A stretch of DNA of 64,000 nucleotides from Octopus sinensis (lineage: Eukaryota). Below, in pieces: positions 3,896 to 63,219 of this stretch (positions within the stretch are counted from its first letter, which is position 1; each line of letters starts with the position of its first letter). The notes under the pieces were generated by a model. That model had not been told where the DNA came from. It searched no databases and saw only the letters and a list, made by a program, of their open reading frames with translations. The translations under genes and the position numbers were made by a program. The stretch spans positions 14,818,001-14,882,000 of the forward strand of contig NC_043007.1 in the NCBI RefSeq assembly GCF_006345805.1, in the 5' to 3' direction.

Positions 3896-4034
3896 ATTGA
3901 GATGAGACACACATTGAGAGATCCGTTGGAAAATGTAAGCCATGTATCAATCAAATCTGTACCATTCGCTGTTTCCAAGGAAGGGTTTATTGGTAACTAT
4001 GAGCCTGCCCCTAGAGAAGCACTCGACAGACCTG
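3896..4034 (+). CDS. GALNT7: GALNT7-like, first visible coding exon (stem region; IEMRHTL...GFIGNYEPAPREALDRPG)
   Basis: tttacag acceptor and gtaag donor; 139 nt, phase 0 to 1; GNYEP...PG resembles the GALNT7 stem (GNFEP...PG). The upstream TM exon was not found in the window. Confidence 0.8.
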
Positions 4035-7641: not shown

Positions 7642-7780
7642 GTGACTACGGCAAACCGGTGATCGTGAGAGGAAAAGAAAGAGTTTTGGCTGAGAAATCT
7701 GTGGGAATTTATGGATACAACATAATTGCAAGTGACAAAATTGCAATGGACCGAATACCACCGGATTTTAGAATGACCGA
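7642..7780 (+). CDS. GALNT7: GALNT7-like exon (GDYGKPVIVRGKERVLAEKSVGIYGYNIIASDKIAMDRIPPDFRMTD)
   Basis: tag/gtaagt boundaries; phase 1 to 2; typical GalNAc-T G-x-x-G-K-P ... N-x-x-x-SDxIxxDR motif. Confidence 0.92.
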
Positions 7781-10718: not shown

Positions 10719-10891
10719 TTGTAAGTTTTGGCATTATCCCGAAGAATCAGAACTGCCATCAGCAAGTGTGGTTATAGCGTTCCGTGATGAAGGTTGGTCC
10801 ACACTTCTGAGGACCATCCATAGCGTTATTAATATGTCTCCGCCAGCTTTACTCAAAGAGGTCATCTTGATTGATGACGAAAGTAATAAAG
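10719..10891 (+). CDS. GALNT7: GALNT7-like exon, start of GT-A domain ([36 protein letters not shown]...[11 protein letters not shown])
   Basis: ttgcag/gtcag; phase 2 to 1; matches the GALNT7 pattern CKYWHY...[21 protein letters not shown]. Confidence 0.95.
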
Positions 10892-11708
10892 GTCAGCTTC
10901 TTGTATTTTGTGTATATGTATGTGTATGTATGTAATTACACACACATTCTGTATGTGTGTGTGTGTGTGTTAGTATGCATGCATGTATGTATGTTGTATG
11001 TATGTTTGTTTGTATGTATGTATGTAAGTATGTATGTATGTATGTATGTTTGTTTGTTTGTATGTATGTATGTATGTATGTATGCATGTATGTATGTATG
11101 TATGTATGTATGTATGTATGTATGTATGTATGTATGTATGTATGTATATATGTATGTCAGGTCACTTTCGAGTGCTACTGGTAACATGTAACCCAGTACA
11201 ACCTGTTGCATGGTCGGGTCGTCGGCAACTAAACCGGCAACCCCACCAAGCTTGCTTGGTGAGGAGGGTGTTTATTGGACACCCTGCAGGATGAAAAACA
11301 AAACCTGTTAAAGGGTGGACGAACACTTGAGTGTCAACGGCCATCCAATAAATGTCTTAAGACTGTATCAAGCACGGGGACATAGAAATAATCGGACTGA
11401 ATACCCGATTGCGCGGTTAAACCATTGGGAGTGAAGGACTCCTAGCCTCTGTTAGGGCATCCTTCTAGGAGAAGGTAACTCAGGTAACTGGGATAATTCC
11501 GACATAAAACCTGCGGCTCAGTGGTTACCGATGATGTTAACTTGTTCTTCTTTTCGGATTATGGCTGCTGTTGCTTAGTGAGTGAGATTGACTCCGTGCA
11601 CAGCCTTTCCTCACTTTAAAAGAAATCTTCTTGCACAGGCATTGCACGATAACAACATTGATTAAGCTTCGTGCAATGGCCATACTCGATAACGAGGGGG
11701 CAGCCACC

Positions 11709-11741
<33 letters not shown>

Positions 11742-13829
11742 TGTATGTATGTATGTATATTCACTGCATGATGGCCTTTGTTGACTGGTGCAGTTGATGT
11801 TGCAATTTAGCTAAATTAAATCACAACACCAACTGCATTGACTAAATTAGCCAAATTAAGGTGACGAGCTGGCAGGATCGTTAACACACTGTGTAAAATA
11901 CTTAATAACATTTTGTCCATCTTTACATCCTGAATTCAAATTCTACCAAAGTCGACTTTAGTTCAACCTATGCCAGCATGTGGAGGCACATGGCCTAGTG
12001 GTTAGAGCAGCGGACTCGCGGTTGAGGGATCGTGGGTTTGAATCTCAGACCGGGCGATGTGTGTGTTTATGAGTGAAACACTTAAGCTCCATGTCACTCC
12101 GGCAGAAGGTAATGGCGAACCTCTGCTGACTCTTTCGCCACAACTTTCTCTCACTCTTTCCTCCTGCATGAGGGTAATGATGAAACTCTCAGAGTTCTTC
12201 CAGTTTCTATGCTGTTATCTCTTTCATTCAAAATTCTTGCATTTAACTAAGTGGATAATTCTTATCATCTTTTTTGGTGCGTAGATTATCCATTACACTG
12301 TACATGGAGGTGTGTGGAAATTGTGGTTTCGATTCCTGAATCGGGTAATAATGCGTTGTGTTCTTCAGCAAAATACCTCATTTCACATTGCTTCAGTCCA
12401 CTTGGCTGACAAAAGTGTGTAATCCTGAAATTTTGGGGGAATGGGGGGGGGGAGTTGATTAGCTTGAACCCATTATGCAACTGGTACTTAATTTATCGAC
12501 CCCAAAAGGATGGAAGGCAAAGTTGACCTCGGTGGAATTTGAACTCAAAACTTAAAGACAGACGAAATACCACTAAGCATTTCGTGCATTAATGTTTCTT
12601 ATTTCTTTGTTGCCCACAAGGGGCTAAACAGACAAAGGGGTTAAGTCGATTACATCAACCCCAGTGCAAAAGTGGTACTTAATTTATCCACCCCGAAAGG
12701 ACGAAAGACAAAGTCGACCTTGGTGGAATTTGAACTCAGAACGTAATGGCAAACGAAATACCTATTTCTTTACTACATACAAGGGGCTACACACAGAGGG
12801 GACAAACAAGGACAGACAAACGGATTAAATCGATTACATCGACCCCAGTACATAACTGGTACTTAATTTATTGACCGAGAAAGGATGAAAGGCAAAGTCG
12901 ACTTCAGCGGAATTTGAACTCAGAATGTAACAGCAGACGAAATACCACTAAGCATTTCGCCCGGCATGCTAACGTTTCTGCCAGCTCACTCCCTTTTAAA
13001 CTGCCATTTTAATGATTGCAAAATGAACTTTAAGAATGCAAAACATATATTCCTGCATCACATAATCTTTAAAGCCTCCCAACCACCAAAATACATTTGG
13101 TCCCTCCAGTCTGTGACCGATAGTTTTCACAACTAATTTTGCAGAATCCTCAATGAAAATGGTTCTGTAAAAATGATCATCAGAACATAAATGCCAAATA
13201 ATTTACTGTCCATTTTGGTCCCAGTTCCACCATACCTCTCCCCTTCGCTCACATACACACACATACATGCGCACACGCAAACACACATGCAAACACACAC
13301 ACATGCATACTTTGAAATTCACTCCTCTTTCTTTCTCTTCTTTTACTTGTTTCCAGTCATTTGACTGTGGCCATGCTGGAGCACCGCCTTTAGTTGAGCA
13401 AATTGACTCCAGAACTTATTAACTGTAAGCGTAGTACTTATTCCATCAGTCTCTTTTGCTGAACCACTAAGTTATGGGGATGTAAATACACCAACATTGG
13501 TTGTCAAGCGATGGTGGAGGAACAAACAGACTCATAAACACGCATACATATATATACACACACACACATACATACACACATACACACACATGTATATACA
13601 CATACACATATTTATATATCTATATGACAGGCTTCTTTCAGTTTCCATCTACCAAATCCACTCACAAGGCTTTGGTTGGCTTGAGGCTATATAGTAGAAG
13701 ACACTTGCCCAAGGTGCCACGCAGTGTGACTGAACCCAGAACCATGTGGTTGGTAAGTAAGCTACTTTACCACACAGCCATACCAGCACCTCTGTCACTC
13801 ATTCCTCTATCTCCACCTTATATGTTCAA

Positions 13830-14130
13830 CTAGCAGTATCGCCCGGCGTTGCTCAGGTTTGTAAGGGAAATAACTATATAAGCATTTTTAGAGAGTTACT
13901 TCCCTTATATAAACCGAGCAAAAAATGCATTAAAAATGGGAAAAAATGATGGTAAATTTTTTTTTAAATTGTAGACTCATCGTAGACCCGCACTAATACC
14001 CAGAAGGGCTCGATATGAATCACGACTATAAGATACCCGCTTTTGGTTACACTGCACCGCAAAATGTGGGAGTAGTTAAGAATCTAAATCGTAGGAGACA
14101 GACACACAACCTCACTTTTATATATAAAGA
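13830..14130 (-). mobile_element. Same Helitron family, shorter copy
   Basis: Reverse complement of the 373-771 family, same termini. Confidence 0.85.
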
Positions 14131-14239
14131 TTACAAAGTATGAACACCTCTCTTGTTACTTCAGATCAACAAAAATGACGGATTTCTTCAATTTTAGACT
14201 GAATTTCTAATTCTAATTTTCTAACCTGTTTTATTTCAG

Positions 14240-14450
14240 GAAATTTTAAAGCAGATCTCAGTGTATATTTAAAAGATAATTTTAAAGACAAAGTGAACCT
14301 ATTTCGTAACAGCAAGAAAGAAGGTTTGATTCGTTCGAAGACAATCGGTGCTAAATATGCATCTGGAGATATCCTAGTATTTATGGATGCTCATTGTGAA
14401 TGTGGTCGGAACTGGTTGGTACCAATTTTAGCCCTGCTAGCACATAACAG
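14240..14450 (+). CDS. GALNT7: GALNT7-like exon with DxH motif (...EGLIRSKTIGAKYASGDILVFMDAHCECGRNWLVP...)
   Basis: tttcag/gtaatg; 211 nt, phase 1 to 2; DAH at 14386-14394. Confidence 0.95.
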
Positions 14451-14759
14451 GTAATGTTATTTATTGTTCAAAAAATGTTTCAAGAAAAATAATTCCATGA
14501 AAAACAACAAAATTTGTTGTGTCTGGGGAGAGTAATTTTTTTTTTTTGTGCTTTATAATGTAACACACTCATCAGTAAAATTTCCACTTATTTCTTATTT
14601 TTATTTTCCTAAAATTTTTTTGTGTCTTGGCAACCTTTTCAATAGTCTTGACTCTATTGTCAGATTTTAGGAAAATAAAAATAAGAAATAAGTGGAAATT
14701 TTACCAGTGAATGTGTTACATTGTAAGGCACAAAAAGAAAATTACTCTCTCCAGACATA

Positions 14760-15010
14760 CACAAGCATGGAACAAACTGCCGGCATCAGTTGTTAATTGT
14801 TGGAACACTGCATCCTTCAAAACTTCCATGCTTCCTGAGATTCGCCAACACTACACCTGATTTTCTCCCCTCCATACACACGCAAGCATGTATCTGACTC
14901 ATACATTGTTCGCTTTCCAGAGATTTGTACATTACTGCATATACTTTATACGCAATTTTTGACAAGTTGTGATGCACCTGGGCACTGTATACAATAATTT
15001 CATTATTATT
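14760..15010 (+). mobile_element. CR1-like LINE 3' end
   Basis: Matches the 3' part of the 34720-35180 copy. Confidence 0.65.
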
Positions 15011-16458
15011 TTTTTATATTTAGAATATGCTTCAACACACGAACTCATATAAAAAATCTTGTAAACCAAATCCAAAAACAAAAAACAAGGTTGTTTACTT
15101 ACAAATCTTTGGCTCCCATTTAAAGGGTTTTTTATGATATTGAAGAGGGTTGCTTTTGCAGATTTAAAACTTATAGAATCAGAGGGGACCATTCAAGAGT
15201 CATCAAGAATTCCTCCATATGGCTGCTTAGCCTGCAAGAAATAGCAGTAAATACTTCCTCAAATTAAATATTTTCCTTTCTTAATAAAGAAAATATAAAC
15301 TACATCTAACACATGTTAGATATAGATCTTATATGCTAAAGCTGAAAGCAAACAAAAAAAAAAGAAGGTTGATTGAGGCTGGAACGCGGCTGATTACAGG
15401 TGTGTTTGATCAAACAGGCCAACTGATAGAGTCACTAGAACTTTAGATTGAATGCTTTGCAATATTCAGTCCAACCCTGGCAGAAACGTTAGCATGCTGT
15501 GCAAAATGCTTAGTGGTATTTCGTCTGCTGTTACATTCTAGGTTCAAATTCCGCCGAGGTCGACTTCACCTTTCATCCTTTTGGGGTCAATAAATTAAGT
15601 ACCAGTTATGCACTGGGGTCGATGTAATCGACTTAATCTCTTTGCCTGTCCTTGTTTGTCCCCTCTATGTTTAGCTCCTTGTGGGCAATAAAAAAATAAG
15701 AAACGTTAGCTGGTAAAAATGTTAGCATACCAAGCGAAATGCGTAGTGGTATTTCATCTGTCTTTCACTTTCTGAGTTCAAATTCCGCTGAGGTCGACTT
15801 TGTTTTTCATCCTTTTGGGGGTCAATAAATTAAGTACCAGTTGCTTACTCGGGTCAATCTAATCGACTGCCTCTCCCCTCCCCCCAAATTTCGGGCCTTG
15901 TGCCTAGAGTAGAAAAGATTATTCAGTTCAACCATTTACACTGTGAATTCAAATCCTGCTGAGGTCAATGGTGCGTTTCGTCCTTTTGAGGTTGATAAAT
16001 TAAATATCTGTCAAGTACTTAGGTTGATTCTTCTTTTCTCCTGCCACACCATCTCCCTCCCTCTTCCTCCCTCTCCCCACCTCTCTCTTCAGAAGAAATT
16101 GACTGTGTTCAAATCTGGAAAGGGACAAGCACCAGCAGGTTTAAGGTGCTCAAGACATACTCATGTCATGATGGTGCACCTACAATTCTGTTCGGGGCCA
16201 TCAAGGGCTCCTACCCACACCTCTCACCGTCTACTCAATCGAAACTGACATGGGGGTCAGCAACAACCAACAACATGGAGATAAACATAAAGACTGCTTC
16301 ACCTTGATGGAAATACAAAATGGCAGTGATGTACAATCTTGATTTTTCTAAGTGACAGAGTAGAAATAACCTTGGCACATTTAGCCAAGTCTGTTATGAT
16401 TGAACAGTGGTTCCTAGCTTGCATGGAAGTGCCCTCTTGTGGGTATTGATAGCTCATA

Positions 16459-16691
16459 GAGGTGGCGAGCTGGCAGAATCGTTAGCACGCCGGGCGAAAT
16501 GATTAGCAGTATTTCGTCTGCCGCTACGTTCTGAGTTCAAATTCCGCCGAGGTCGACTTTGCCTTTCATCCTTTCGGGGTCGATTAAATAAGTACCAGTT
16601 ATGCACTGGGGTCGATGTAATCGACTTAATACCTATGTCTGTCCTTGTTTGTCCCCTCTATGTTTAGCCCCTTGTGGGTAATAAAGAAATA
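16459..16691 (+). mobile_element. tRNA-derived SINE family A with 17-bp TSD (family present in dozens of copies)
   Basis: ggtattgatagctcata on both sides; B-box-like gagttcaaattcc. Confidence 0.85.
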
Positions 16692-17307
16692 GGTATTGAT
16701 AGCTCATAAGCTGGAAGTAAATATCAAGAGGGTTCTATGAAAATGATGGGTGTTTAGAAGGATGATGATTTTTCTTACACCAAATAGGATCTTGTTTTGT
16801 CTTCTTGTCTCCATTCTCTTACTTGATGAGGCTGGGGTCAATCCAAGTTAGTGGTCCCAGAGGTGTCATCACACATAAAGTTGGACAGGTCCATCAATGC
16901 TCTTCCTCACTGGTGGTCCCGTGCCAGCCCCTCTGCATCGTCCTAGGTGATATTGAGCCTCTGGAGATCTTTCCCAATCATGTCCAGCCATCTGGTGCAG
17001 GGCTTGCCACAAGGCCACTTCCAGCATGCAACTGCTGTGTTGAATGAGAGTAAAACCCTGGTGGGATGATCTAGTGGGAGACTTATAATTTAAATATCAT
17101 CATCATCATCGTTTCAGTCATTTGACTGCAGCCATGCTGGAGCACCGCCTTTTTGTCGAGCAAATTGACCCTGGGATTTATTCTTTGTAAGCCCAGTACT
17201 TATTCTATCGGTCTCTTTTGCCGAACCGCTAAGTGACGGGGACATAAACACAGCAGCATCAGTTGTCAAGCAATGCTAGGGAGACAAACAAAGACACACA
17301 AACGCAT

Positions 17308-17353
<46 letters not shown>

Positions 17354-17629
17354 TATATAATATATATATATATATACATATATACAACAGGCTTCTTTCA
17401 GTTTCCGTCTACCAAATCCACTCACAAGGCATTGGTTGGCCTGGGGCTATAGCAGAAGACACTTGCCCAAGATGCCACGCAGTAGGACTGAACCCGGAAC
17501 CATGTGGTTGGTTAGCAAGCTACTTACCACACAGCCACTCCTGCGCCTATTGTCCTGGGTTGGACAATTAATAATAATAACATTGAAAAATACCTTAGCA
17601 ATGAGAACCCAGGTTCGAAATTTCCCCAA

Positions 17630-17675
17630 GACACCTGATGAAGGCTGGAGGGTATATCAGACGAAACGTTGTGTT
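17630..17675 (+). ncRNA. Minimal type I hammerhead ribozyme-like motif
   Basis: gacac-CUGAUGA-a-ggcug/caga(c)c-GAAA-cgu-u-guguu; stem I and palindromic ACGU stem III. Confidence 0.65.
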
Positions 17676-17773
17676 AACAACAAACAAGATGAGGACAAAT
17701 ATCTGTCAAATGTAAATAATGTAAATAATGTATTGTGATTTTATGTAATAATTTTCTTGTTATTTCTTTGCAG

Positions 17774-17947
17774 AACCATCGTGGCATCTCCAGTCACTAA
17801 TGTAATTGACTGGGAAACTTTTGCTTACAAGACAACTTTTAGAGAGAAACATCATCATGGTATTTTTGAATGGGGGTTTCTTTATAAAGAGAGCAAAGTG
17901 CCAGATATGGAGCTGACGAGCAGAAAGTACAATAGTGAACCCTATCG
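17774..17947 (+). CDS. GALNT7: GALNT7-like exon (TIVASPVTNVIDWETFAY...HGIFEWGFLYKESKVP...NSEPYR)
   Basis: ttgcag/gtaac; phase 2 to 2; GIFEWGxLYKE...NSEPYR matches invertebrate pgant7. Confidence 0.95.
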
Positions 17948-18128
17948 GTAACAACTTTTTTCAAATAACTATTTATTCTCGATTTGATAATAGCCCTCAG
18001 TTAAAACCGTCCAACCCATGCTTGCATGGAAAACGGACGTTAAATGATGATGATGATGTTTCCTAAAATAAGCATGAAGTCACATATCTTTGGCAATCTA
18101 TGTTTTAGTGATTAACTGGTACTTATTT

Positions 18129-18541
18129 GGGATCTTTTCGGTTTGAATGGCACTTTTTTCTAGCGGTATCATATGAAATTGTCACCCATAATTATGACCC
18201 TAGTATCGATCTATTGCATTTCAATCTGTTTTAGGGTTGGGGTGGGGGGAAGGGTATCTTTTTTTCCTTCACAAATGTAAATAAACCCAGTCTGTTTCTC
18301 AAACGAGGGACATATTCATACGGCACAGAATGTTTTTTACTTCAATAGACGTCAGTAATTGGTTGAAATTGCAGAAATTGAAGAAAAAAAACAACAAATA
18401 TCTTACAAACTATAGAATTTTCTCAATAAAGCCAGGAGAAAAAGATGTTTTATAAACACATTCTACCAGTATACGAAGTTGAAAATTTTTTAGTTACCTA
18501 GAAATTATGTTAAAAACTTCTGTTCAAACTGAAAAGATTTG
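18129..18541 (+). mobile_element. Monomeric relative of the 8869-9687 foldback
   Basis: Starts gggatcttttc, ends gaaaagat; body equals one arm of the foldback. Confidence 0.75.
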
Positions 18542-20844
18542 AAATTTGATCCAGTTCCAGACAAATGAAAGACCAACTTGGCTTTGGCTGAGCGAGGTCG
18601 TTGCCAGTGCCGCTGGACTGGCTCCTGTGCAGGTGGCACATAAAAAGCACCATTTGAGTGTGGCCGTTGCCAGTACCACCTGACTGGCCCTCACGCCAGT
18701 GGCACGTAAAAGCACACACTACACTCTCAGAGTGGTTAGCGTTAAGAAGGGCATTGAGCTATAGAAACTCCGCCAGATCAGATTGGAATTTGGTGCAGCC
18801 ATCTGGTTCGCCAGACCTCAGTCAAATTGTCCAACCCATGCCAGCATGGAAAGCGAACATTAAACGATGATGATTATGATGATGATGATGATGATGATGA
18901 ACTCAAAATGTAAAGAAAGCTGGAACATATTTTCCAACACATTTTGCTCATTGTATAAATGATTCTACTAATCCACTGCCCTTAATATAATAATCCTTTC
19001 TACTAAAGGCACAAAGCCTGGAATTTGTTGGGAGGAGCATAGTTGATTATATTGACCCCAATACTTGACTGGTACTTAATTTATTGAACCCGAAAGGATG
19101 AAAAGCAAAGTCAACCTCAGCAGAATTTGAACTCAGAATGTATCCGGTAGATGAAATACTGCCAAGCATTTCACCCGGCGTGCTAACGAACTGCCCTTAA
19201 TAATAATGGTTTCAAATTTTTGCACAGGGTCAACAATTTTTGCAGAGAGTGGGATGTCAATTACTCAAAAAGAATGAAAGGTGAGGTTAACCTGAGAAAA
19301 ATTTGAGCTCAAGGCATACAGATGGACAAAATGCCGCTAAGCTTTTATTTGAGTGTGGTAATGATCCTGCCAGTTCGTTGTCTTAATAACAATAATGGCT
19401 TCAAATTTTGGCACAAGGCCAGCAATTCTGGGGGAGGGGTCAAGTTGATTACAATTTTGCCTTACATCCTTTTGGGGTTGATAAATTAAGTACCACTTAT
19501 GCACTGGGGTCGATATAATCGACTTAATCCCTTTGTCTGTCCTTGTTTGTCCTCTCTGTGTTTAGCCCCTTGTGGGTAGTAAAGAAATAGGTATTTCGTC
19601 TGCAGCTACGTTCTGAATTCAAATTATGCTGAGGTTGACTTTGCCTTTCATTCTTTCAGGGTGGATAAATAAGTACCAGTTACGCACTGGGGTTGATGTA
19701 ATCGACTTAATCCTTTTGTCTGTCCTTGTTTGTCCTCTCTGTGTTTAGCCCCTTGTGGGTAGTAAAGAAATAGGTACTTCGTCTGCTGCTACGTTCTGAG
19801 TTCAAATTACGCTGAGGTTGACTTTGCCTTTCATCCTTTCAGGGTTGATTAAATAAGTACCAGTTACGCACTGGGGTCGATGTAATCGACTTAATCCCTT
19901 TGTCCATCCTTGTTTGTCCCCTCTATGTTTAGCCCCTTGTGGGTAGTAAAGAAATAAGAAACTACACTACTGCAGTATTCAGCATGGAAGAAGGTTGCAT
20001 AATAACATGTGATCACATGACCGACTTAACTATTGGATGTTGTTAAACATCACTGGTCACAATGCACTTTGCATCATCATAGCTTTTGAATGATGCCACC
20101 CTGCTGGCTAGGCAAGCAGGCCAATATTTATACCCCCTAGCTGTAAGGCTTCTCCATTGTAGGATTTCCCATTTACAGCTGAATGGACTGGAGCAACTTG
20201 AAATGAAGTGTCTTGCTCAAGAGCACGTTGTGCTCTTTGTCCAGAAATCATACCCATGACCTAGTGACCATGAGTGCAAAGCCCCAACTACAAGGCTGTG
20301 AACCTTCACATAATAACCCAAGAAAAATCATTTTTGCTGGGGCCATATCTGAGGCCGGTTTTTTTTTTTTTTTTTTTTTTTTTACTAATTTCAGAGTGCT
20401 GAACCTTAAAACCATATATATTTTATCTTTTTGTTAAGAAGGAAGGACAGTAACCATGGCTTTTTACCTCTTCCCCTTCATACCTATTTCTTTACTACCC
20501 ACAAGGGGCTAAACACAGAGGAGACAAACAAGGACAGATAGACGGATTAAGTCGATTATATCGACCCCAGTGTGTAACTGGTACTTAATTTATCCACCCT
20601 GAAAGGATGAAAGGCAAAGTCGACCTCGACAGAATTTGAACTCAGAACGTAATGGCAGGCGAAATACCGCTAAGCATTTCGCCCGTCATGCTAACGTTTC
20701 TGCCAAAACCCCACCTTTTCATACCACCACCACCACCACCACTGCCGTTTTTTTCTCCCCTTTCCTTATCCTTGCTGTTTTAATATCTGCTGTTGATAAT
20801 GTCTTTTTTTCTTGATGTAAATCTTGTTGTTTATTGCTGTCCAG

Positions 20845-20962
20845 TTCTCCAACCCTTGCTGGTGGCTTGTTTGCTATAGACGGCAAATATTTCTTTGAAC
20901 TTGGAGGTTTTGATCCAGGACTTCAGTCACAGGGAGGAGAGAATTTTGAATTATCTTTCAAG
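20845..20962 (+). CDS. GALNT7: GALNT7-like exon, Gal/GalNAc-T motif ([39 protein letters not shown])
   Basis: gtccag/gtaagt; phase 2 to 0. Confidence 0.95.
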
Positions 20963-20992
20963 GTAAGTATTTCTATCAGAAACAAACACACT

Positions 20993-21009
<17 letters not shown>

Positions 21010-21027
<18 letters not shown>

Positions 21028-22270
21028 CATACATACATGGTGGCTGCCCCCTCGTTATCGAGTATGGCCATTGCGCGAAGCTTAATCAATGTTGTTATCG
21101 TGCAATGCCTGTGCAAGAAGATTTCTTTTAAAGTGAGGAAAGGCTGTGCACTGAGTCAATCCCACTCACTAAGCAACACCAGCCATAATCCGAAAAGAAG
21201 AACAAGTCAACATCATCGTAACCACTGAGCCGCAGGTCTTATGTCGGAGTTATCCCAGTTACCTGAGTTACCTTCTCCTAGAAGGATGCCCTAACAAAGG
21301 CTAGGAGTCCTTCACTCCCAATGGTATAACCGCGCGATCGGGTATTCAGTCTGATTATTTCTATGTCCCCGCGCATGATACATACATACATACATACATA
21401 CATATAAATATATATATATCATCAACATCATCATCCTCATCATCATCATCGTTTAACATCCGTTTTCCATGGTAGCATGGGTTGGACGGTTCGACTCAGG
21501 TCTGGGAAGTCAGGAGGCTGTGCTAGGTTCCAGTGTGATCTGGCAGTGTTTCTACAGCTGGATGCCCTTCCTAACGCCAACCACTCCATGAGTGTAGTGG
21601 GTGCTTTTTACGTGCCACCACCACAGGGCCCATATATAATATATATATATATATATATATACATACATACATACATGGTGGCTGCCCCCTCGTTATCGAG
21701 TATGGCCATTGCGCGAAGCTTAATCAATGTTGTTATCGTGCAATGCCTGTGCAAGAAGATTTCTTTTAAAGTGAGGAAAGGCTGTGCACTGAGTCAATCC
21801 CACTCACTAAGCAACACCAGCCATAATCCGAAAAGAAGAACAAGTCAACATCATCGGTAACCACTGAGCCGCAGGTCTTATGTCGGAGTTATCCCAGTTA
21901 CCTGAGTTACCTTCTCCTAGAAGGATGCCCTAACAAAGGCTAGGAGTCCTTCACTCCCAATGGTTTAACCGCGCGATCGGGTATTCAGTCTGATTATTTC
22001 TATGTCCCCGCGCATGATACATACATACATACATACATACATATAAATATATATATATCATCAACATCATCATCCTCATCATCATCATCGTTTAACATCC
22101 GTTTTCCATGGTAGCATGGGTTGGACGGTTCGACTCAGGTCTGGGAAGTCAGGAGGCTGTGCTAGGTTCCAGTGTGATCTGGCAGTGTTTCTACAGCTGG
22201 ATGCCCTTCCTAACGCCAACCACTCCATGAGTGTAGTGGGTGCTTTTTACGTGCCACCACCACAGGGCCC

Positions 22271-22290
<20 letters not shown>
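21010..22290. repeat. Near-identical tandem duplication, about 638-bp unit
   Basis: The two copies differ by one SNP and one 1-nt indel outside microsatellites. Confidence 0.9.
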
Positions 22291-22301
<11 letters not shown>

Positions 22302-22344
22302 GAATAAAAAAATTGTTAACAAGGTAAAAATACACTCATCTATT

Positions 22345-22392
<48 letters not shown>

Positions 22393-23646
22393 TGTATGTA
22401 TGTATGTATTATAAGGAGAATAGAGAGTTATAAATATTTTCATCCATTCGATATAGAACAATATAGAATTTTAACAATATAAAAAAAGAAAAATGGAGAG
22501 TTTTAACACAGAAAAAAAATCAATTTATTTATATAATAGTCAATTTCCTAGGTATTTCCTAGGTATTTATCAATTTCTTACCTTCATTCATGTTTTTGCG
22601 ATTAAGATTGCATTATGCATTCATAAGGTAAAAATCTTTTCAGGGCAAAAATTTACAAATATTCATTCACATCCTAATTGATGGAGAGTTACTTGTCGGC
22701 AAACAACTCTCCTTCCATGAGGATGTGAATGGATATTTGTAAATTTTTTGCCCAGAAGAGATTTTTACTTTATAAATACATAATGCAATCTTAATTGCAA
22801 AAACATGAATGAAGGTAAGAAAGGATGAAAGGCAAAGTAGACCTCGGCGGAATTTGAAATCAGAACGTAATGGCAGACGAAAGTTGAGTTCAAATTTCGC
22901 CGACGTCAACTTTGCCTTTCATCCTTTCGGGGTCGATTAAATAAGTACCAGTTATGCACTGGGGTAGCTATAATCGACTTAATCTGTTTGTCTGTCCTTG
23001 TTTGTCCCCTCTGTGTTTAGCCCCTTGTGGGTAGTAAAGAAATTGGTATGGTTATCCAACTTCTTTAAAGGACAGTCACTCCAAATAAGGACTGACTTGG
23101 CCTATGACAGCCTATCCAATCGTGGCTAGCATGGAAAGCAGGTGTGAAATGAGTTTGTTAATGCTGCTGCTGCTGCTTTGTTTGTTTGTTTGTTGAACAA
23201 AGCGGTCTTCGTCCCATTAGTGGGGGAAGTCCGAAACGTGGTCCTTTGCTATTTGTAAGACCCGCAGAAGAGAAAGCAGGTCAACCCCCTAACACCGAGA
23301 GCATCGACGGATGGATGAATGCGCATCCAGGCTCAGCAGTTGCGTAGAAAGTCGGGGACAAGAAACAAGAAGAAAGAGTGAGAGAAATTTGAAGTGAAAG
23401 AGTACAACAGTGGTCGCCACCCACCCACCCCTGCTGGAGCCTCGTGGAGCTTTAGGTGTTTTCGCTCAATAAACACACACAACGCCCAGTCTGGGAATCA
23501 AAACCATGATCTTCCGAACGCTGCTGATGATGATGATGAGATGATGACGACGATGATGATGATTACGAGGATGATGATGATGATGATGATGATATATAAA
23601 ATGCATGGTTATCTAAAATCGATTGTATCCTTGTTTTCTTTTCCAG

Positions 23647-23717
23647 ATATGGCAGTGTGGAGGCAGCATAAAGTGGGTCCCATGTTCCCATGTTGGATAC
23701 GTCCGTCAAACGCCCAT
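23647..23717 (+). CDS. GALNT7: GALNT7-like exon (IWQCGGSIKWVPCSHVGYVRQTPM); 3' boundary uncertain (23717 or 23761)
   Basis: ttccag acceptor, phase 0; IWQCGGSIxWVPCS is diagnostic; only weak donors are available. Confidence 0.85.
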
Positions 23718-24158
23718 GTTTTTAGACACCGTCCAAAATCTCAGTGATCTTGCTTTGGTTTGTATCTGTTATTGTAGATAAACATTACTATTTAGTACCA
23801 GTGAAAAACTGGGGTTAATTTGATCAGCTATAATGTCCCCCCCCTTCTATACCAGTGACAATGGTAGAAACTAATATTTGAAGACTGTGCAGTAAACTGC
23901 ATATTTAATTTATAGACATCAATTTCTAATTGTTCAAGAATAACATTTATTTATCATGTTGGTTTCATTGACCTCAGAGGACCTTCAAAGACCATAAGCT
24001 AATCTTTTAGTAGTGGGTGATCTTTAGAAGCAGATGAGTTTTTCTAATTCCGTTTAGAAGGTGATTACTGGTTGCTATAGTTGATAGCTGGTAACGAAAT
24101 TTGAGCTCTCTTTGTTATTCTCACAATGAATTTAAAAACAAAGAATTTGAGACATTAA

Positions 24159-25797: not shown

Positions 25798-26056
25798 GAA
25801 AGCTAACGCCTATCCATTTCCATTGTTTACTCAGAATTACATACGAGTTGTCGAAGTGTGGCTGGACAATGAACACAAACAGTATTTCTATGCGAGACAA
25901 CCTTCAATGGAAGAATACCCTATTCTTAACATTTCCAAACAGCTGGAATTTAAGAAGGAGCACGAATGTAAGAGCTTCAAATGGTTTCTGGAGAATGTAG
26001 CCAATGAAGTACTGGACTATTATCCACCACCGCCCCCTAATAAATATTGGGGCCAG
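25798..26056 (+). CDS. GALNT7: GALNT7-like exon, end of catalytic domain and linker (KANAYPFPLFTQNYIRVVEVW...CKSFKWFLENVANEVLDYYPPPPPNKYWGQ)
   Basis: cctccag/gtaagt; NYxRVVEVW and CKSFKWF motifs. Confidence 0.93.
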
Positions 26057-27989: not shown

Positions 27990-28091
27990 GTTATGTTGGA
28001 AAACACTAAAACTTGTAGTTATTGGCGGGCATCAGCTGCTAAAGAAAGAAATATTCGTATGAGTCCTTGCAAGTCCGACAAAGAAAGCCAG
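27990..28091 (+). CDS. GALNT7: GALNT7-like exon, ricin-type lectin alpha repeat (VMLENTKTCSYWRASAAKERNIRMSPCKSDKESQ)
   Basis: cattcag/gtaac; 34 codons, phase 0 to 0; two Cys and terminal Q spaced as in a lectin alpha repeat. Confidence 0.8.
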
Positions 28092-31170: not shown

Positions 31171-31302
31171 CTGTTTCGGTTATTTCGGTTAAATGTGAAA
31201 GGTCAATTGATATGGGATGAGTTCTGCATTGAAACAAGAAACGATATTTTATACATACAAGAGTGTCCTGTCCAACCTACTAGTAACTGGTCCTATCTAG
31301 AG
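31171..31302 (+). CDS. GALNT7: GALNT7-like exon, lectin beta repeat (LFRLFRLNVKGQLIWDEFCIETRNDILYIQECPVQPTSNWSYLE)
   Basis: ttttacag/gtaagc; 44 codons; matches pgant7 LVRLNAAGQL...CVE...C...W.Y. Confidence 0.88.
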
Positions 31303-35481: not shown

Positions 35482-36408
35482 AATACAAAACAAATTTTCA
35501 ACAGTCGTTTCCGAAAATGTGTTGAAGCAGCATCAAACTCTGTTCTTTGTCTCAAAGACTGTGATGCTAACAACAAGATGCAGCAATGGAGTTTTAAGAA
35601 ATTTAGGACCTGGGATGCTCCTAAACAACAACAACAACCTCAACAACCGCAGCAGCAGCAGCCGCCTCAACAACATGAACACCAAAAACAGCCTGAACAA
35701 CAACAACAACAACAACAACAACAAAAACAACCTGAACAACAACAACAACAACAAAAACAGCCTGAACAACAGGAACAAGAACAACAAAAACAACCTGAAC
35801 AACAACAACAACAAAAACAACCTGAACAACAACAACAACAAAAACAGCCTGAACAACAACAACAACAACAAAAACAACCTGAACAACAACAACAACAACA
35901 ACAAGAACAACAAAAACAGCCTCAACAACAACAACAACAACAACAAAAACAACCTGAACAACAACAACAACAACAACAAGAACAACAAAAACAGCCTCAA
36001 CAACAACAACAACAACAAAAACAACCTGAACAACAACAACAACAACAAAAACAGCCTGAACAACAACAACAAGAACAACAAAAACAGCCTGAACAACAAC
36101 AACAAGAACAACAAAAACAGCCTGAACAACAACAACAACAACAACAAAAACAACCTGAACAACAACAACAACAACTACAACAACAACAAAAACAGCCTCA
36201 ACAACAACAACAACAACAAAAACAGCCTCAACAACAACAACAACAACAACAACAACAAAAACAGCTGCAACATCAACAACAAGAACAACAAAAACCGCCT
36301 CAACAACAACAACAACAACAACAAAACACAGCCTCAACAACAACAACAACAACAACAACAACAAAAACAACCTCAACAACAACAACAACAACAACAAAAA
36401 CAGCCTGA
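35482..36408 (+). CDS. GALNT7: GALNT7-like terminal exon: lectin gamma repeat (NTKQIFNSRFRKCVEAASNSVLCLKDCDANNKMQQWSFKKFRTW) plus Gln-rich then Thr-rich tail
   Basis: ttcattctag acceptor in phase 0; QQW ricin motif; in frame with ORF 35578..36408. The stop position depends on a 1-nt insertion at 36327. Confidence 0.85.
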   Translation, partial: NTKQIFNSRFRKCVEAASNSVLCLKDCDANNKMQQWSFKKFRTWDAPKQQQQPQQPQQQQPPQQHEHQKQPEQQQQQQQQQKQPEQQQQQQKQPEQQEQEQQKQPEQQQQQKQPEQQQQQKQPEQQQQQQKQPEQQQQQQQEQQKQPQQQQQQQQKQPEQQQQQQQEQQKQPQQQQQQQKQPEQQQQQQKQPEQQQQEQQKQPEQQQQEQQKQPEQQQQQQQKQPEQQQQQLQQQQKQPQQQQQQQKQPQQQQQQQQQQKQLQHQQQEQQKPPQQQQQQQQNTASTTTTTTTTTKTTSTTTTTTTKTA

Positions 36409-36440
36409 ACAACAACAACAACAACAACAAAAACAGCCTC

Positions 36441-36478
<38 letters not shown>

Positions 36479-36687
36479 AAACAGCCGCAACATCAACAAA
36501 AACAACAAAAACAGCCTGAACAACAACAACAACAACAAAAACCGCCTGAACAACAACAAGAACAACAAAAACAGCCTCAACAACAACAACAACAAGAACA
36601 ACAAAAACAGCCTTAACAACAACAACAACAACAACAAAAACAACCTGAACAACAACAACAACAACAACAACAAAAACAGCCGCTACT

Positions 36688-36718
<31 letters not shown>

Positions 36719-36850
36719 AAACAGCCTCAACAACAAAAATAACAACAACAACAGCGTCAACAACAAAAATGGCCCCAACAAGGAGAACAAGAACAGCCTC
36801 AATAACAACAACAACAGCAGCCTCAACAAGAACAACTATAGCAGCAGTAG
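35620..36850 (+). repeat. (CAA)n-based compound coding minisatellite, unit caa aaa cag cct gaa (caa)n
   Basis: Direct reading of the sequence; degenerates after about 36740. Confidence 0.95.
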
Positions 36851-44184: not shown

Positions 44185-46375
44185 AACAACAAACAAGATG
44201 AGGGCAAATATCCGTCAAATGTCAATAATGTACATAATTCCTCATCTCTTAAACATAGAACTGAAAGAAAATTCTGATTGAAGTTTGGGGCTACAGTGTC
44301 AGTTCTTCCTTAATCTCTTTATGTCTTCGTACAAAGGAGGAGATGCACTGCTAAATGGTGCATCACCAAGCTTCATGATTAAAGGCTATAGGAAACATTG
44401 GGTGATGGTAGATGTAACACATGCCAAAGGATTCTTCAGAGAGCCCTGGTAGTCAGTAGAAATTTTGCTATACTCTTTTACTTGTTTCAGTCATTTGACT
44501 GCGGCCATGCTGGAGCAATGCCTTTAGTCGAACAACTCAACCCCAGGACTTATTCTTTGTAAGCCTAGTACTTATTCTATCAGTCTCTTTGGCTGAACTG
44601 CTAAGTGACGGGGATGTAAACACACCAGCATTGGTTGTCAAGCAATGCTCTAGGGACAAACACAGACACACAAACACACACATACATATATATATACATA
44701 TATATATACGACAGGCTTCTTTCAGTTTCCGTCTACCAAATCCACTCACAAGGCATTGGTCGGCCCGGGGCTATAGCAGAAGACACTTGCCCAAGATGCC
44801 ATGCAGTGGGACTGAACCCGGAACCATGTGGTTGGTTAGCAAGTTACTTACCACACAGCCACTCCTGCGCCTATACAGGATAATCTTGAGCAAATGCTGT
44901 CTTTTTTCCATTCTAGAAATGTGCTCTGTTTAATGCTGTTGTAAATTGAATAGTGTGGCCCTTGTGCTGGTGACTTCAGCCTGTTTTAGGATTTCAATCA
45001 TCATCATCATCATCGTTTAACGTCCGCTTTCCATGCTAGCATGGGTTGGACGGTTATGACTGAGGGCTGGCAAACCAGATGGCTGCACCAGGCTCCCATC
45101 TTGATTTGGCAGAGTTTCTACAGCTTGATGCCCTTCCTAACGCCAACCACTCCGAGAGTGTAGTGGGTGCTTTTATATGCCACCAGCACGGAGGCCAGTC
45201 AGGCAGTACTGGCAATGACCTCGCTCGAATCTTTTTACACATGCCACCAGCACAGGTGCCAGTAAGGCGACGTTGATAACGATCACGCTTGAATGATGCC
45301 CTTTTACATGCCACTTGCACAGAAGCCAGTTGGCTGCTCTGGTAATGATCATGCTCGGATGGTGCTCTTGGCACCCTACTAGCTCGGGCACAAGTGCCAG
45401 TAAGGCGATGCTGGTAACGATCACACTCGAATGGTAAAAAAATTATTCCAGTCAATGGCAAGGGTGGTGTTATGCAGGCAGTCTTCAAGAAGTCATTGGT
45501 GTTTATGGTAGGTAATTCACTACTCAGTGCCACAGACACACATACATGCTAGTACACACATACACACATTCCCCAGTAGTGATAGGTTCCATCAACTACA
45601 GCTTGCCTTCCACTTCACCCATCCTACCGTTATATTTTCCTGCATCATGATCTGAAATGTCAGGCTTTTATTTCTCTAATTTAAATATGGAGGCCAGATC
45701 TATCCAATATTTATTTGCTTCCATTACTGGTTGTATACTCTGGTGGACTACATCTGCCAACATTATAAATTAAATCTGATCCTCTAGAAACAGCTGTTGG
45801 ACATGCGACACCATAACTTCTCCCCTTTAATTTTCTCTGTCGTTTGTACTCTGTGTAAGTTTGCTCTGTTAATATATAAATATCTATATATTTATACTTG
45901 AATATTCATCGTCTGAAAATTTTCCAGTCTTTGTTTTATCTCTATTTACATCATCATTGTTTAACGTCCGTTTTCCATGCTGGCATGGGTTGGACGGCTC
46001 GACCGGGGTCTGGGAAGCCAGGAGGCTGCGCCAAGCTCCAGTCTCATCTGGCAGTGTTTCTACAGCTGGATGCCCTTCCTAACGCCAACCACTCTGTGAG
46101 TGTAGTGGGTGCTTTTTACATGCCACCGGCACAGGAGCCTGAGGCTGGCAAACAGCCACGAATGGTCACCGACATGTATACATATTTCGTATATTAAACT
46201 CAAGCAGTTTTATTTGTCTATATGTATTATTGTCTCCATAGCTGCTCACCTGGATTCCTCTTATAGCCACACTTTACCCTGAAGACTTGGTCCTTGGTAA
46301 AAATATCAGAGTGTAAGTTCAAATCATTTGAGCACTACTGTTTTCTATACTGAGAATCTCTGGATCTCATGTTGA

Positions 46376-47075: not shown

Positions 47076-49902
47076 ATCATCATCATCATCATCATTTAGC
47101 GTCCGTTCTCCATGCTAGCATGGGTTGGACGGTTCAACTGGGGTCTGTGAAGCTGGAAGGCTTCATCAGGCCCAGTCAGATCTGGCAGTGTTTCTACGGC
47201 TGGATGCCCTTCCTAACGCCAACCACTCCGTGAGTGTAGTGGGTGCTTTTTACGTGCCACCTGCACAGGTGCCAGACAGAGCTGGCAAACGGCCACGAAC
47301 GGATGGTGCTTTTACGTGACACCGGCACGGGGCCAGGCGAGGCTGGCAACGGACACGAACGGATGGTGCTTTTACGTGCCACCAACATGGGGGCCAGACA
47401 GAGCTGGCAAACGGCCACGAAACGGATGGTACTTTTACGTGTCACCGGCACGGGGGCCAGGCGAGGCTGGCAATGGGCACGAACGGATGGTGCTTTTACA
47501 TGCCACCGACATGGGGGCCAGACAGGGCCGGCAAACGGCCACGAACGGATGGTGCTTTTACGTGTCACCGGCACGGGGGCCAGGCGAGGCTGGCAACGGA
47601 CACGAACGGATGGTGCTTTTACATGTCACCGACATGGGGGCCAGACAGGGCTGGCAAACGGCCACGAACGGATGGTGCTTTTACGTGTCACCGGCACGGG
47701 GGCCAGACAGAGCTGGCAATCGGCCACGAACGGATGGTGCTTTTACGTGTCACCGGCACGGGGGCCAGACAGAGCTGGCAAACGGCCACGAACGGATGGT
47801 ACTTTTACGTGTCACCGGCACGGGGGCCAGGCCAGGCTGGCAACGAACACGAACGGATGGTGCTTTTACGTGCCACCTACACGGGGGCCAGACAGGGCTG
47901 GCGAACGGCTACGAACGGATGGTACTTTTACGTGTCACCTGCACGGAGGCCCTGATGTTGATCGACCTCAATTTGGTTTGATCTTGATTTTGACTGTTCT
48001 CACTGGTCTTGCCAGGTTTTCTCACGCACAGCATACCTCCAAAGGTCTCGGTCACTGGTCATTTCCTTGGTGAGACCTAAAGTTCGAAGGTCGTGCTTCA
48101 CCGCCTCGACCCAGGTTTTCCTGGGTCTACCTCTTCCACAGGTCCCCTCAACTGCCAGGGTGTGGCACTTTCGCACACAACTATCTTCAGCCATTCTCAT
48201 CACATGACCATACCAGCGCATACGTCTCTCTTGCACACAACAACTGATACTTCTTAGATTCAACTTTTCTCTCAAGGTACTTACACTCTGTCGATTATGA
48301 ACACTGACGTTACACATCCATCGGAGCATACTAGCTTCATTTCTTGCGAGCTTACGCAAATCCTCAGCAGTCACAGCCCAAGTTTCACTACCATGTAGCA
48401 TGGCTGTACGTACACATGCATCATACAGTCTGCCTTTTACTTTGAGCGAGAGGCCTTTTGTCACCAGCAGAGGTAAGAGCTCTCTAAACTTTGCCCAGGC
48501 TATTCTTACTCTAGCAGTTATACTCTCAGCGCACCCGCCCCCGCTACTGACTTGGTCACCTAGGTAACGGAAACTATCAACTACTTCTAGCTTTTCTCCC
48601 TGGAAAGTGACGGAAGTTGGTCTCAGAGCATCTTCAGTGTTAATTGTTCCTGAGCATCTGCCACATACAAAAACCATCTTCCTAGTTAGCCTTCCTTTGA
48701 CATTGCTGCACCTCTTATGTGTCCATAGCTTACACTTGGTGCATCTTATAGAGTTTCTACCTACACCTTTTCTACAGATCGAGCAGGGCCATCTACCTGA
48801 AGGCGTTTGTGATTGGTCTACCTTCCTACTTATTAGGACTTTGGTTTTGGCTAGGTTGATTCTAAGGCCCTTCGATTCTAAACCTTGTTTCCATACCTGA
48901 AACTTCTCCTCTAGTTCTGATAGAGACTCAGCAATTAGAGCAAGGTCATCAGCATAGAGGAGCTCCCAGGGGCATCCTGTCTTGAATTCCTCCGTTATTG
49001 CCTGGAGGACTATGATAAATAGGAGGGGACTGAGGACTGAACCTTGGTGGACCCCAACCTCTACCCTGAATTCTTCACTGTACTCGGTGCCAACCCTCAC
49101 CTTACTAGCAGCGTCTCTGTACATGGCTTGTACAGCTTTCACTAACCATTCATCTATCCCTAGTTTCCTCATTGACCACCAGATGAGGGATCGGGGGACC
49201 CTGTCGAAGGCTTTCTCCATATCAACAAAAGCCAGGTATAGGGGCTTGTCTTTGGCTAGGTATTTCTCTTGCAGCTGTCTTACCATGAAAATAGCATCAG
49301 TAGTACTTTTCCCTGGCACGAACCCAAACTGCATCTGATCTAGGCTAACTCCCTCTCTAATTAGTTGGGCTATAACCCTCTCCGTAACCTTCATTACCTG
49401 ATCCAGCAGCTTGATACCCCTGTAGCTATTTGTATCTAGGGCGTCACCTTTACCTTTGTAGCAGCTGACTATTATGCTGCTACACCAGTCATTGGGAATG
49501 ACTCCTTCGTGTATCACCTGGTTAACTATACGGGTGACTAGGCTATAGCCGACACTACCAGATATTTTGAGCATCTCTGCAGTAATTCCTGATGGGCCTG
49601 GGGCTTTCCCTGTTTTCATGCTTTTAATTGCCTTATCTACTAAGGAACTGTCAACTCGGATTGCTGGTCCCTCTGTTGGGTCAACATTCGGCAGACTCTC
49701 TTTATCCCATTCATTTTCCTCATTCAGCAACCTTTCATAGTGGCTTCTCCAAACCTCTCTCTTTGCATCCTCATTTAGCGCAAGTGAGCCGTCATCCGTG
49801 CGAACACATTTTTCTCCTACCACGTCACGATTCTCTCTCACACACTGTCTTGCTATACGAAATACCTCAAGTCTTTCATCCTCACGGCGCAGGACATTGG
49901 CA
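47076..49902 (-). mobile_element. 5'-truncated RTE-type LINE with uninterrupted RT ORF (48000-49902) and expanded 3' UTR array
   Basis: ORF 48000..50021 is stop-free; same family as 37030-39632; (CAT)n tail near 47076; the 5' break falls at a (TA)n tract. Confidence 0.95.
47240..47950. repeat. Tandem array of about 11-12 units of 59-64 bp inside the LINE 3' UTR
   Basis: Repeated ggatggtgcttttacgtg...ctggcaa...cacgaac. Confidence 0.9.
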
Positions 49903-50120
49903 TATATATATATATATATGAATTTGAATAAATGAATAAAAAATGAAAACAAAAACAAACATGAGGACGTGCACACGATGTGCATTAGCCTGACGCTTGG
50001 TGAAAAGAGAGAGTTTAACATTCAGAGCATAACTCTTTGTTAGAAAGGAGAAAGGGAAAAGTCCAAAGAAAGAGAAGAAATCATCAATGGTGTATGTATA
50101 GTTACATTGCTGAAGTGTGA

Positions 50121-63185: not shown

Positions 63186-63219
<34 letters not shown>

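Follow-up and report, generated by a model that had tools for sequence, protein, structure and literature searches.

A GALNT7 gene of Octopus with a degenerate active site and an unbroken reading frame, and its probable eclipse by an intronless copy

The stretch of DNA analysed here (the window) comprises 64,000 nucleotides of the Octopus sinensis genome (contig NC_043007.1, positions 14,818,001 to 14,882,000 of the forward strand), and it carries, on its forward strand, a GALNT7-type gene whose exons are intact and whose active site is degenerate. Our favoured reading, held with moderate confidence, is that this is the ancestral GALNT7 of octopuses, catalytically dead, probably still translated, and made redundant by a second, intronless copy located elsewhere in the genome. 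The intact exons and the degenerate active site had already been described in an earlier interpretation made from the letters of the DNA (hereafter the sequence-only reading), and all the codons cited there for them are as described. That interpretation had also regarded the gene as a paralogue, which does not agree with its exon-intron structure, since all ten comparable intron positions are shared with an abalone GALNT7-like gene.

By descent, the window gene belongs to the polypeptide GalNAc-transferase family GT27 and, within it, to the GalNAc-T7 type, as indicated by several homology comparisons. The top homologue matches of the window protein are all labelled GALNT7 or GALNT7-like, and the RefSeq protein XP_029642743.2 from O. 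sinensis (named “GALNT7, partial”) corresponds, with 100% identity in tblastn, to the translation of all the window exons. The protein matches the Pfam families PF00535 (Glycos_transf_2, E 5e-27) and PF02709 (Glyco_transf_7C, E 2e-6), as well as 17 PDB GalNAc-T chains at E <=1e-41, and the best solved-structure match of a 248-residue draft of its catalytic domain is human GalNAc-T7 (PDB 6iwq, E 6e-74). The C-terminal lectin domain is of the ricin type, with the (QxW)3 pattern: PF00652 is precomputed for XP_029642743.2 and the domain forms a beta-trefoil in the structure model described below, its alpha motif being degenerate; the gamma lectin fragment taken alone gives a weak match to PF00652 (E 0.004, below the cutoff).

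In order to judge the active-site substitutions, about 250 family members gathered by homology searches were aligned and the residues were tallied column by column. The tryptophan of the WGGEN motif, present in 253 of 254 homologues, is replaced by glutamine (cag at 20930-20932) in coding exon 7 (20845..20962), where SQGGEN (20927-20944) stands for the canonical I/V-WGGEN and where a further degenerate site is found, SPTLAGG instead of SPTHAGG. Likewise, the histidine of VGH (245 of 246 homologues) has become tyrosine (tac at 23698-23700) in coding exon 8 (23647..23757), which reads VGYVRQ (23692-23709) instead of VGH-V/I-Y/F-R before entering a diverged flexible loop, and with this histidine the third Mn2+ ligand is gone, as the sequence-only reading had proposed. 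The first residue but one after VGH, tyrosine or phenylalanine in all 245 homologues, is arginine in the window protein, and the residue that follows it, arginine in 234 of 245, is glutamine. The replacement of the tryptophan by glutamine and of the histidine by tyrosine, together with the loss of the tyrosine and arginine following VGH, is truly exceptional in the family. In coding exon 6 (17774..17947), PVTNVID (17790-17810) replaces P-x-I-D/E-x-I-D, with threonine at the third position (isoleucine in 199 homologues, valine in 58) and asparagine at the fourth (aspartate or glutamate in 256 of 257), two residues which, at these positions, were found in none of the 257 homologues. The DxH metal motif is retained in coding exon 5 (14240..14450) as DAH (14386-14394), again as had been described, its histidine being present in 258 of 258 homologues. 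The change of FHNE into FRDE in coding exon 4 (10719..10891; motif at 10780-10791) had also been put forward as a sign of degeneration, and the substitution is there (cgt gat at 10783-10788); however, it carries little weight, because the histidine of FHNE varies within the family (186 of 247, with tyrosine, valine and phenylalanine being common), and the asparagine (226 of 247) is replaced by aspartate, as in the window, in 10 homologues. In the alignment with human GalNAc-T7 (6iwq), the window motifs stand opposite FHNE, DAH, PLIDVI, IWGGEN and VGHIY. Concerning the P-x-I-D site, a separate observation can be made on the cephalopod GALNT7 proteins with canonical motifs (the intronless ones and the multi-exon one from cuttlefish), which have glutamate, not aspartate, at this position (PIVESID or PIIESIN); aspartate is found in most other animals, and the proteins with glutamate are P0124, P0125, P0128, P0140, P0249, P0253, P0258 and P0262. 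Judging from these sequences, glutamate is evidently tolerated at this site in a conserved gene.

By position arithmetic over an ungapped stretch, the glutamine and the tyrosine of the window protein are the equivalents of Trp331 and His359 in human GalNAc-T2. In this enzyme, Mn2+ is held by Asp224, His226 and His359, and the flexible loop 362-373 is coupled to Trp331, a key residue for catalysis, both being key for activity (PMC4432651); of the three ligands named there, one is lost in O. sinensis and two in Octopus bimaculoides. The degeneration extends to the lectin domain, whose alpha repeat is encoded by coding exon 10 (27990..28091). In this exon, which was too diverged for motif and tblastn homology searches and was located by mapping the RefSeq protein, C-x-D has become C-S-Y and C-H-x-x-G-G-N-Q has become C-K-S-D-K-E-S-Q, so that the aspartate and the histidine found in 108 and 109, respectively, of 117 T7-like proteins are here tyrosine and lysine. 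In GalNAc-T7, the alpha repeat is the repeat that binds GalNAc (PMC10901373). Coding exon 11 (31171..31302), which encodes the beta repeat, contains an in-frame tandem duplication in which the 9-base unit TTTCGGTTA occurs twice (31174-31191), giving LFRLFR in the lectin domain; the duplication is common to Octopus vulgaris and is found neither in O. bimaculoides nor in any other homologue.

The same gene was compared in three Octopus species, using the O. vulgaris orthologue (assembly GCA_951406725.2, locus L007) and that of O. bimaculoides (GCA_001194135.2, locus L008, reached via XP_052827964.1), with a cuttlefish transcript (L001) as the outgroup for codons. The tryptophan codon, TGG in the cuttlefish, is CGG (arginine) in O. 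bimaculoides and CAG (glutamine) in both O. sinensis and O. vulgaris. The histidine codon of VGH (CAY) has become TAC in O. sinensis and O. vulgaris and CGC in O. bimaculoides, and since each of these is one step away from a histidine codon, the losses are probably independent. The region around this residue differs in all three species (VGYVRQ in O. sinensis, VAYVHQ in O. vulgaris and VAR in O. bimaculoides, the next residues being VRQ, VHQ and IHR, respectively). Additionally, DAH is kept in O. sinensis and O. vulgaris and is DAP only in O. bimaculoides, FRDE occurs in O. sinensis and O. vulgaris (the arginine being found only there) and FHDE otherwise, and the PVTN of O. sinensis is PIAN in O. 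bimaculoides. From these patterns we infer an order of loss in which the tryptophan, whose loss is shared by the three species, would have gone first, with the metal ligands following later and independently in each lineage.

Two alternative explanations of the unusual residues bear directly on this comparison. The first, that the codons are sequencing or assembly errors of one genome, is refuted by the appearance of the same tryptophan and histidine losses in three independent assemblies (that of O. sinensis, GCA_951406725.2 and GCA_001194135.2). According to the second, the protein would still work as a glycosyltransferase, having changed its donor sugar, its acceptor or its need for a metal. 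The retention in O. sinensis of DAH and of the glutamate of GGEN would suit such an enzyme, as would the predicted intactness of the fold; nevertheless, one Mn2+ ligand is gone in O. sinensis and two in O. bimaculoides, and the substituted residues vary among congeners (Q/R; VGY/VAY/VAR; DAH/DAP; PVTN/PIAN). Had a new specificity evolved, its residues should have become fixed; replaced active-site residues that differ even between congeners point to decay and not to a new donor specificity, and we consider an active enzyme of this kind very unlikely. Of the two roles suggested in the sequence-only reading, a pseudoenzyme or a transferase with an altered donor, only the former thus remains plausible. 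The proposal that the FHNE changes resemble genomically fixed editing sites fared in a similarly divided way: compared with the cuttlefish codons, both changes are indeed single A-to-G steps (CAT to CGT and AAT to GAT), but derived A-to-G changes number 15 of 60 in the O. sinensis/O. vulgaris lineage and 11 of 57 in O. bimaculoides, much like G-to-A and other transitions, which gives no sign of editing fixation in general, even if single sites could still have arisen in that manner.

The second GALNT7 of octopuses is fully canonical, with FHNE, DAH, WGGEN and VGHVYR all in place (CAI9741530.1 in O. vulgaris, XP_052833021.1 in O. bimaculoides and the partial XP_029651395.1 in O. sinensis). Whether such a copy is present elsewhere had been raised as a check on the sequence-only reading, and one does exist, intronless and on another chromosome: in O. 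vulgaris, the intronless gene lies on chromosome record OX597839.1 and the multi-exon gene on OX597824.1, and in O. bimaculoides the corresponding records are CM046626.1 and CM046611.1. In both species (loci L009 and L010, respectively) the gene range, at 1857 nt, is exactly as long as the coding sequence. The genomic DNA of these two loci, as well as that of the intronless relatives in Argonauta hians and on one ENA contig (loci L011 and L012), translates straight to protein, with the gene range again equal to the coding length in each. We infer that octopods carry an intronless second GALNT7, and coleoid cephalopods in general probably do so too. The loss of all coding introns suggests that the canonical copy is probably a retrocopy, and remnants of the retroposition itself are not to be expected, because the event is too old. 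This copy presumably does the enzymatic work, given that none of its catalytic motifs has been lost and that purifying selection acts on it strongly (see below).

As for the window gene, its introns indicate that it is the ancestral, parental, intron-containing GALNT7 locus. All of the 10 comparable intron positions are common to the window gene and to the 27-kb GALNT7-like gene of abalone, the matching being precise to 0-3 residues (as set by the ends of the tblastn segments). The nearest relative beyond Octopus is a cuttlefish protein, in a cluster which includes CAE1238683.1 from Acanthosepion (Sepia) pharaonis; this cuttlefish orthologue has all the canonical motifs, its gene spans 130 kb, and it is found in at least 17 transcript contigs. 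In a neighbour-joining tree (Kimura-corrected distances, 486 ungapped columns, 300 bootstraps), the multi-exon genes of Octopus group with the multi-exon gene of the cuttlefish with 88% bootstrap support, and the intronless genes form one clade with 100%. Both cephalopod clades hold octopod members plus a second, non-octopod group, and the duplication probably predates the split between octopods and decapodiforms, if the non-octopod intronless sequences are decapodiform. Both paralogues were looked for in the same non-octopod samples, and the sample lists of the two did not overlap.

The two copies differ sharply in their rates of change, for which Nei-Gojobori estimates were obtained from three closely related Octopus sequences. 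For the multi-exon gene, the nonsynonymous (dN) and synonymous (dS) rates are nearly equal in all comparisons: dN is 0.015 and dS 0.017-0.018 between O. sinensis and O. vulgaris (dN/dS 0.81-0.91), 0.114 and 0.135 between O. sinensis and O. bimaculoides (0.84), and 0.112 and 0.148 between O. vulgaris and O. bimaculoides (0.76). For the intronless copy, compared between O. vulgaris and O. bimaculoides, dN is 0.014-0.019 and dS 0.27-0.32, with a dN/dS of 0.05-0.06, a difference between copies which is significant at p=1e-18. The Octopus multi-exon lineage has a root-to-tip distance of 0.71-0.73, against 0.35-0.49 for other lophotrochozoan sequences. The proportion of nonsynonymous differences (pN) is 0.05-0.18 along the whole gene, with no region of clearly low dN, and the exon divergence between O. 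sinensis and O. bimaculoides (165 of 1509 positions) is the same as in those intron flanks that could be aligned, about 0.10. The earlier statement that the gene looks maintained therefore holds for its frame and splice sites and does not hold for its amino-acid sequence. As a side observation, the dS between O. vulgaris and O. bimaculoides is about two-fold higher for the intronless copy (0.27-0.32) than for the multi-exon gene (0.135-0.148) and for the intron flanks (about 0.10-0.11); a regional difference in mutation rate or base composition, or a bias of the local intron alignments, are possible reasons for this gap.

Rates of this kind are what would be expected of a unitary pseudogene in the making, that is, a functionless locus, poorly or not expressed, whose open frame would be a leftover modelled by annotation pipelines. 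A dN/dS of 0.76-0.91, indistinguishable from 1, agrees with this explanation, as do the match between exon divergence and intron flanks, the lineage-specific loss of invariant catalytic and lectin residues, and the lack of transcript-derived proteins in the protein searches. The 3' end of the gene fits it as well, with the original stop replaced by read-through into a Q-rich repeat of variable length. The last coding exon (35482..36408) encodes the lectin gamma repeat (35482 to ~35622) followed by a tail of KQPEQQQQQ-like units, and ends with TGA at 36406-36408; the tail is present in the three Octopus species, with ~260 residues in O. sinensis and ~335 in O. vulgaris (in O. bimaculoides it runs into an assembly gap), while canonical T7 proteins end a few residues past the last Q-x-W motif. 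At the DNA level, positions 35623-36836 form an imperfect (AAC/CAA)n array (TRF period 3, 405 copies, 73% matches), the first part of which encodes the tail.

What this explanation does not accommodate is the state of the reading frame. Within the window, the gene occupies 3896 to 36408 of the + strand, in 11 coding exons with every border ag/gt and all frames open, and hence well beyond the span of 10719-23717 originally assigned to it. The exon for the membrane anchor, exon 1, was searched for inside the window and not found there; it lies farther upstream. Besides the exons already mentioned, the gene includes coding exon 2 (3896..4034, flanked by ag/gt), which encodes the stem region (IEMRH...ALDRPG) and matches residues 43-89 of XP_029642743.2 with 100% identity in tblastn, coding exon 3 (7642..7780), with the end of the stem and the start of the catalytic domain and with an intron position common to the abalone GALNT7-like gene, and coding exon 9 (25835..26056), with the C-terminal part of the catalytic domain and the linker, whose sequence is the same in O. 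vulgaris. The end of exon 8, formerly placed at 23717, is at 23757 according to the RefSeq protein model, and this border matches an abalone intron position. Disabling mutations number zero in O. sinensis, O. vulgaris and O. bimaculoides (exons 3-12 having been compared, and exons 2-12 for O. vulgaris). In the O. vulgaris model CAI9729779.1 (510 aa, on OX597824.1), exon 8 is skipped entirely and exon 4 for the most part, and the last exon is different; we regard these defects as an annotation artefact, because the O. vulgaris genome has those exons, open and flanked by ag/gt.

The absence of disabling mutations can be set against what drift would have produced. There are no stops among the 165 substitutions separating O. 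sinensis and O. bimaculoides, whereas simulations placing 165 random substitutions, with the transition bias as observed, gave a mean of 6.4 stops, and 0.17% of the runs were without one (P=0.0017). The two indels found, of 3 and 9 bases, are both in frame, against ~16 events expected from the intron flanks (P ~1e-5), where 0.10-0.26 indel events per substitution were counted, a rate that is inflated by microsatellites. The splice-site bases are the same in O. sinensis and O. bimaculoides at 40 of 40 positions (P=0.012), and the sites checked are ag/gt in the three species. Furthermore, although O. sinensis and O. bimaculoides have different residues at 18 (15%) of the 119 columns in which 117 T7-like proteins are all alike, substitutions are about two-fold depleted at conserved columns (15-18%, against 25-54% at variable columns). 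Taken together, the results on stops, indels, splice sites and columns indicate that something holds the frame open. This combined evidence is very unlikely under free drift since the O. sinensis-O. bimaculoides split, and for this reason we judge a functionless leftover unlikely, in spite of the rates. The window gene is most likely still translated, since its frame and splice sites have been kept open.

A frame that is held open could also mean that the product is a selected non-catalytic protein: a scaffold of the Golgi or endoplasmic reticulum (ER), a regulator of the active GalNAc-T7, or a fast-evolving binding protein. Besides the preserved frame and splice sites and the Q-rich tail present across three species, this explanation can draw on the predicted structure. 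An AlphaFold2 model of the window protein, built with 75 relatives in the alignment, has a mean predicted local distance difference test score (pLDDT) of 91 and a predicted template modelling score (pTM) of 0.89, its least confident stretches being the flexible loop (residues 291-310) and portions of the lectin alpha repeat, and its best fold match in the PDB is GalNAc-T7 (6iwr; TM score 0.91, root-mean-square deviation 2.4 Å). The model thus shows the window sequence to be compatible with a GalNAc-T7 fold, as far as prediction goes. A further argument comes from exon 10, where a comparison of 27990-28091 with L007 46126-46227 shows that 8 of the 25 positions at which the coding sequences of O. 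sinensis and O. vulgaris differ lie within 102 nt (p=8e-5), all 8 being nonsynonymous and none synonymous (Y/N, R/E, A/S, K/G, E/K). The burst probably occurred mostly on the O. sinensis branch, because O. vulgaris has the O. bimaculoides state at 3 of the 5 sites (N, S, G), and it could reflect positive selection, a clustered mutation event or gene conversion. Precedents for such proteins in the family are GALNTL5 (PMC11655647) and T18 (PMC4291152). On the other hand, no region of the gene has a clearly low dN, with pN at 0.05-0.18 throughout, and the sugar site of the lectin alpha repeat, the surface through which T7 would most obviously bind, has itself degenerated. Altogether, a selected non-catalytic protein seems possible without being probable. 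A more specific version, in which the frame would be kept for a new job as luminal scaffold, decoy or regulator, with a GalNAc-T7 fold and the Q-rich tail, and the rapid change, the burst in exon 10 included, would be positive selection on a binding surface, is somewhat more doubtful and is offered as a tentative idea; if it were true, this would be the first invertebrate GalNAc-T pseudoenzyme, and it would be the parental gene, not the retrocopy, that neofunctionalised.

We therefore return to the reading of an ancestral gene made redundant. Starting from what is directly observed (the gene structure, the substitutions, the rates, and the existence and structure of the intronless copy), we infer a loss of activity, a takeover by the intronless copy and continued translation, which may be combined in the following history. 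The intronless copy would have taken over the enzymatic role of GALNT7, and the ancestral Octopus locus would have become redundant. The ancestral copy would have lost the tryptophan that closes over uridine diphosphate N-acetylgalactosamine (UDP-GalNAc) and later, species by species and independently, the Mn2+-holding histidines; the start of the flexible loop and the sugar-binding residues of the alpha repeat would have been lost as well, and a long Q-rich C-terminal tail gained. Its predicted product would be a type II membrane protein with a GalNAc-T7-like fold, lacking productive binding of Mn2+ and UDP-GalNAc and catalytically dead. At present, the locus would be undergoing near-neutral amino-acid change, with stops, frameshifts and splice losses excluded since O. 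sinensis and O. bimaculoides split, and it may serve, under weak constraint, as a non-catalytic pseudoenzyme, be in slow transition towards loss, or be subject to some translation-dependent constraint on its frame.

Several points weigh against this reading. The dN/dS of the window gene does not differ from 1 (p=0.36), and on its own it cannot reject neutrality. The loss of activity is deduced from the residues. No transcript-derived protein of the window copy was found in the protein searches, in any length class, and Logan members are absent from clusters 1-3, whereas the cuttlefish orthologue is abundant in transcript assemblies; this counts as no more than a hint, as the octopus RNA-seq coverage of the collection may be limited. 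The AlphaFold confidence is weak evidence that the real protein folds, because the model drew on an alignment of canonical relatives. Regarding the history, the deeper nodes of the neighbour-joining tree, on which a sisterhood of the intronless and multi-exon cephalopod clades would depend, have supports of 27-63%, and the timing of the duplication and its retroposition origin are drawn from gene structure only.

When placed beside known systems, the window protein resembles GalNAc-T7 itself (CAZy GT27; PDB 6IWQ/6IWR) in its domain order of stem, GT-A catalytic domain and ricin-type lectin domain. It differs from it in lacking the WGGEN tryptophan, the third-ligand histidine, the tyrosine and arginine at the start of the loop, the aspartate or glutamate of PxID, and the aspartate and histidine of the alpha repeat, and in adding a ~260-residue Q-rich tail. 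The vertebrate Y subfamily (GALNT8/9/18/19) is comparable in that the WGGEN tryptophan is replaced and activity is low or undetected. The change in that subfamily is reportedly from tryptophan to tyrosine, as Li et al. are said to have described in 2012; a literature search for YGGEN returned unrelated text only. The subfamily is vertebrate-specific and conserved as such, with tyrosine at the tryptophan position and the metal ligands kept, whereas the octopus gene, from the T7 clade of a mollusc, has glutamine or arginine, variable between congeners, and has lost metal-ligand histidine too.

The clearest precedent for a GalNAc-T pseudoenzyme is GALNTL5, a testis-specific GT27 member of mammals which has no transferase activity and is needed for sperm function (PMC11655647), and with which the octopus gene would share the retention of an inactive family member, its own inactivity being deduced from sequence. 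The two differ in that GALNTL5 lacks a lectin domain and its function (in spermiogenesis, with binding of ER chaperones) has been shown experimentally, whereas the octopus gene is known from sequence, is of T7 descent, still has a lectin domain, if a degenerate one, and is nearly unconstrained in its amino acids. GalNAc-T18 has been suggested to modulate other isoforms (PMC4291152). If the octopus protein is made, it would be an invertebrate addition to a very short list of GalNAc-T pseudoenzymes (GALNTL5, perhaps T18).

At the level of gene history, the closest parallel is the replacement of genes by retrogenes, which then stand as ‘orphan’ retrogenes (PMC5803294, on amphioxus SYCP1; PMC3548309). 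As in those cases, a single-exon copy carries the conserved function and the multi-exon parent decays; the difference is that in the described cases the parent is gone, whereas the octopus parent is present, spliceable and open in three species, and the parental locus is fully canonical in cuttlefish, which points to an intermediate stage. Canonical in cuttlefish and apparently dead, yet unbroken, in three Octopus species, the gene would thus offer a clean and datable view of such a stage. In practical terms, the protein is very unlikely to be the enzyme indicated by its RefSeq name, “N-acetylgalactosaminyltransferase 7” (O. sinensis and O. bimaculoides), and GalNAc-T7 activity in octopuses probably comes from the intronless gene, which matters for cephalopod glyco-gene inventories, expression studies and knock-outs.

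The window as a whole is repeat-rich. Downstream of the gene, on the - strand, a 673-residue open frame (48003-50021) matches Pfam RVT_1 (E 1e-31), with an additional weak PHD-like match, and is probably a copy of a retrotransposon without long terminal repeats (non-LTR). Another stretch of the - strand (62925-63263) contains 113 open codons (…CGSDCIWAVDNKGSVYHKFGVHPPSHTVFTPVWLQVDPEPNGICFTQVIAGPENWMVS) and resembles an exon of another gene, with no Pfam match at E <=0.01. A short interspersed element recurs in the window (e.g., at 1111-1395, 13177-13419, 17089-17568 and 44392-44880), its translations giving ‘LFQSFDCGHAGA...VEQI’ and a second recurring peptide. Finally, (TA/CA)-type microsatellites are abundant, including in the introns of the GALNT7 gene.

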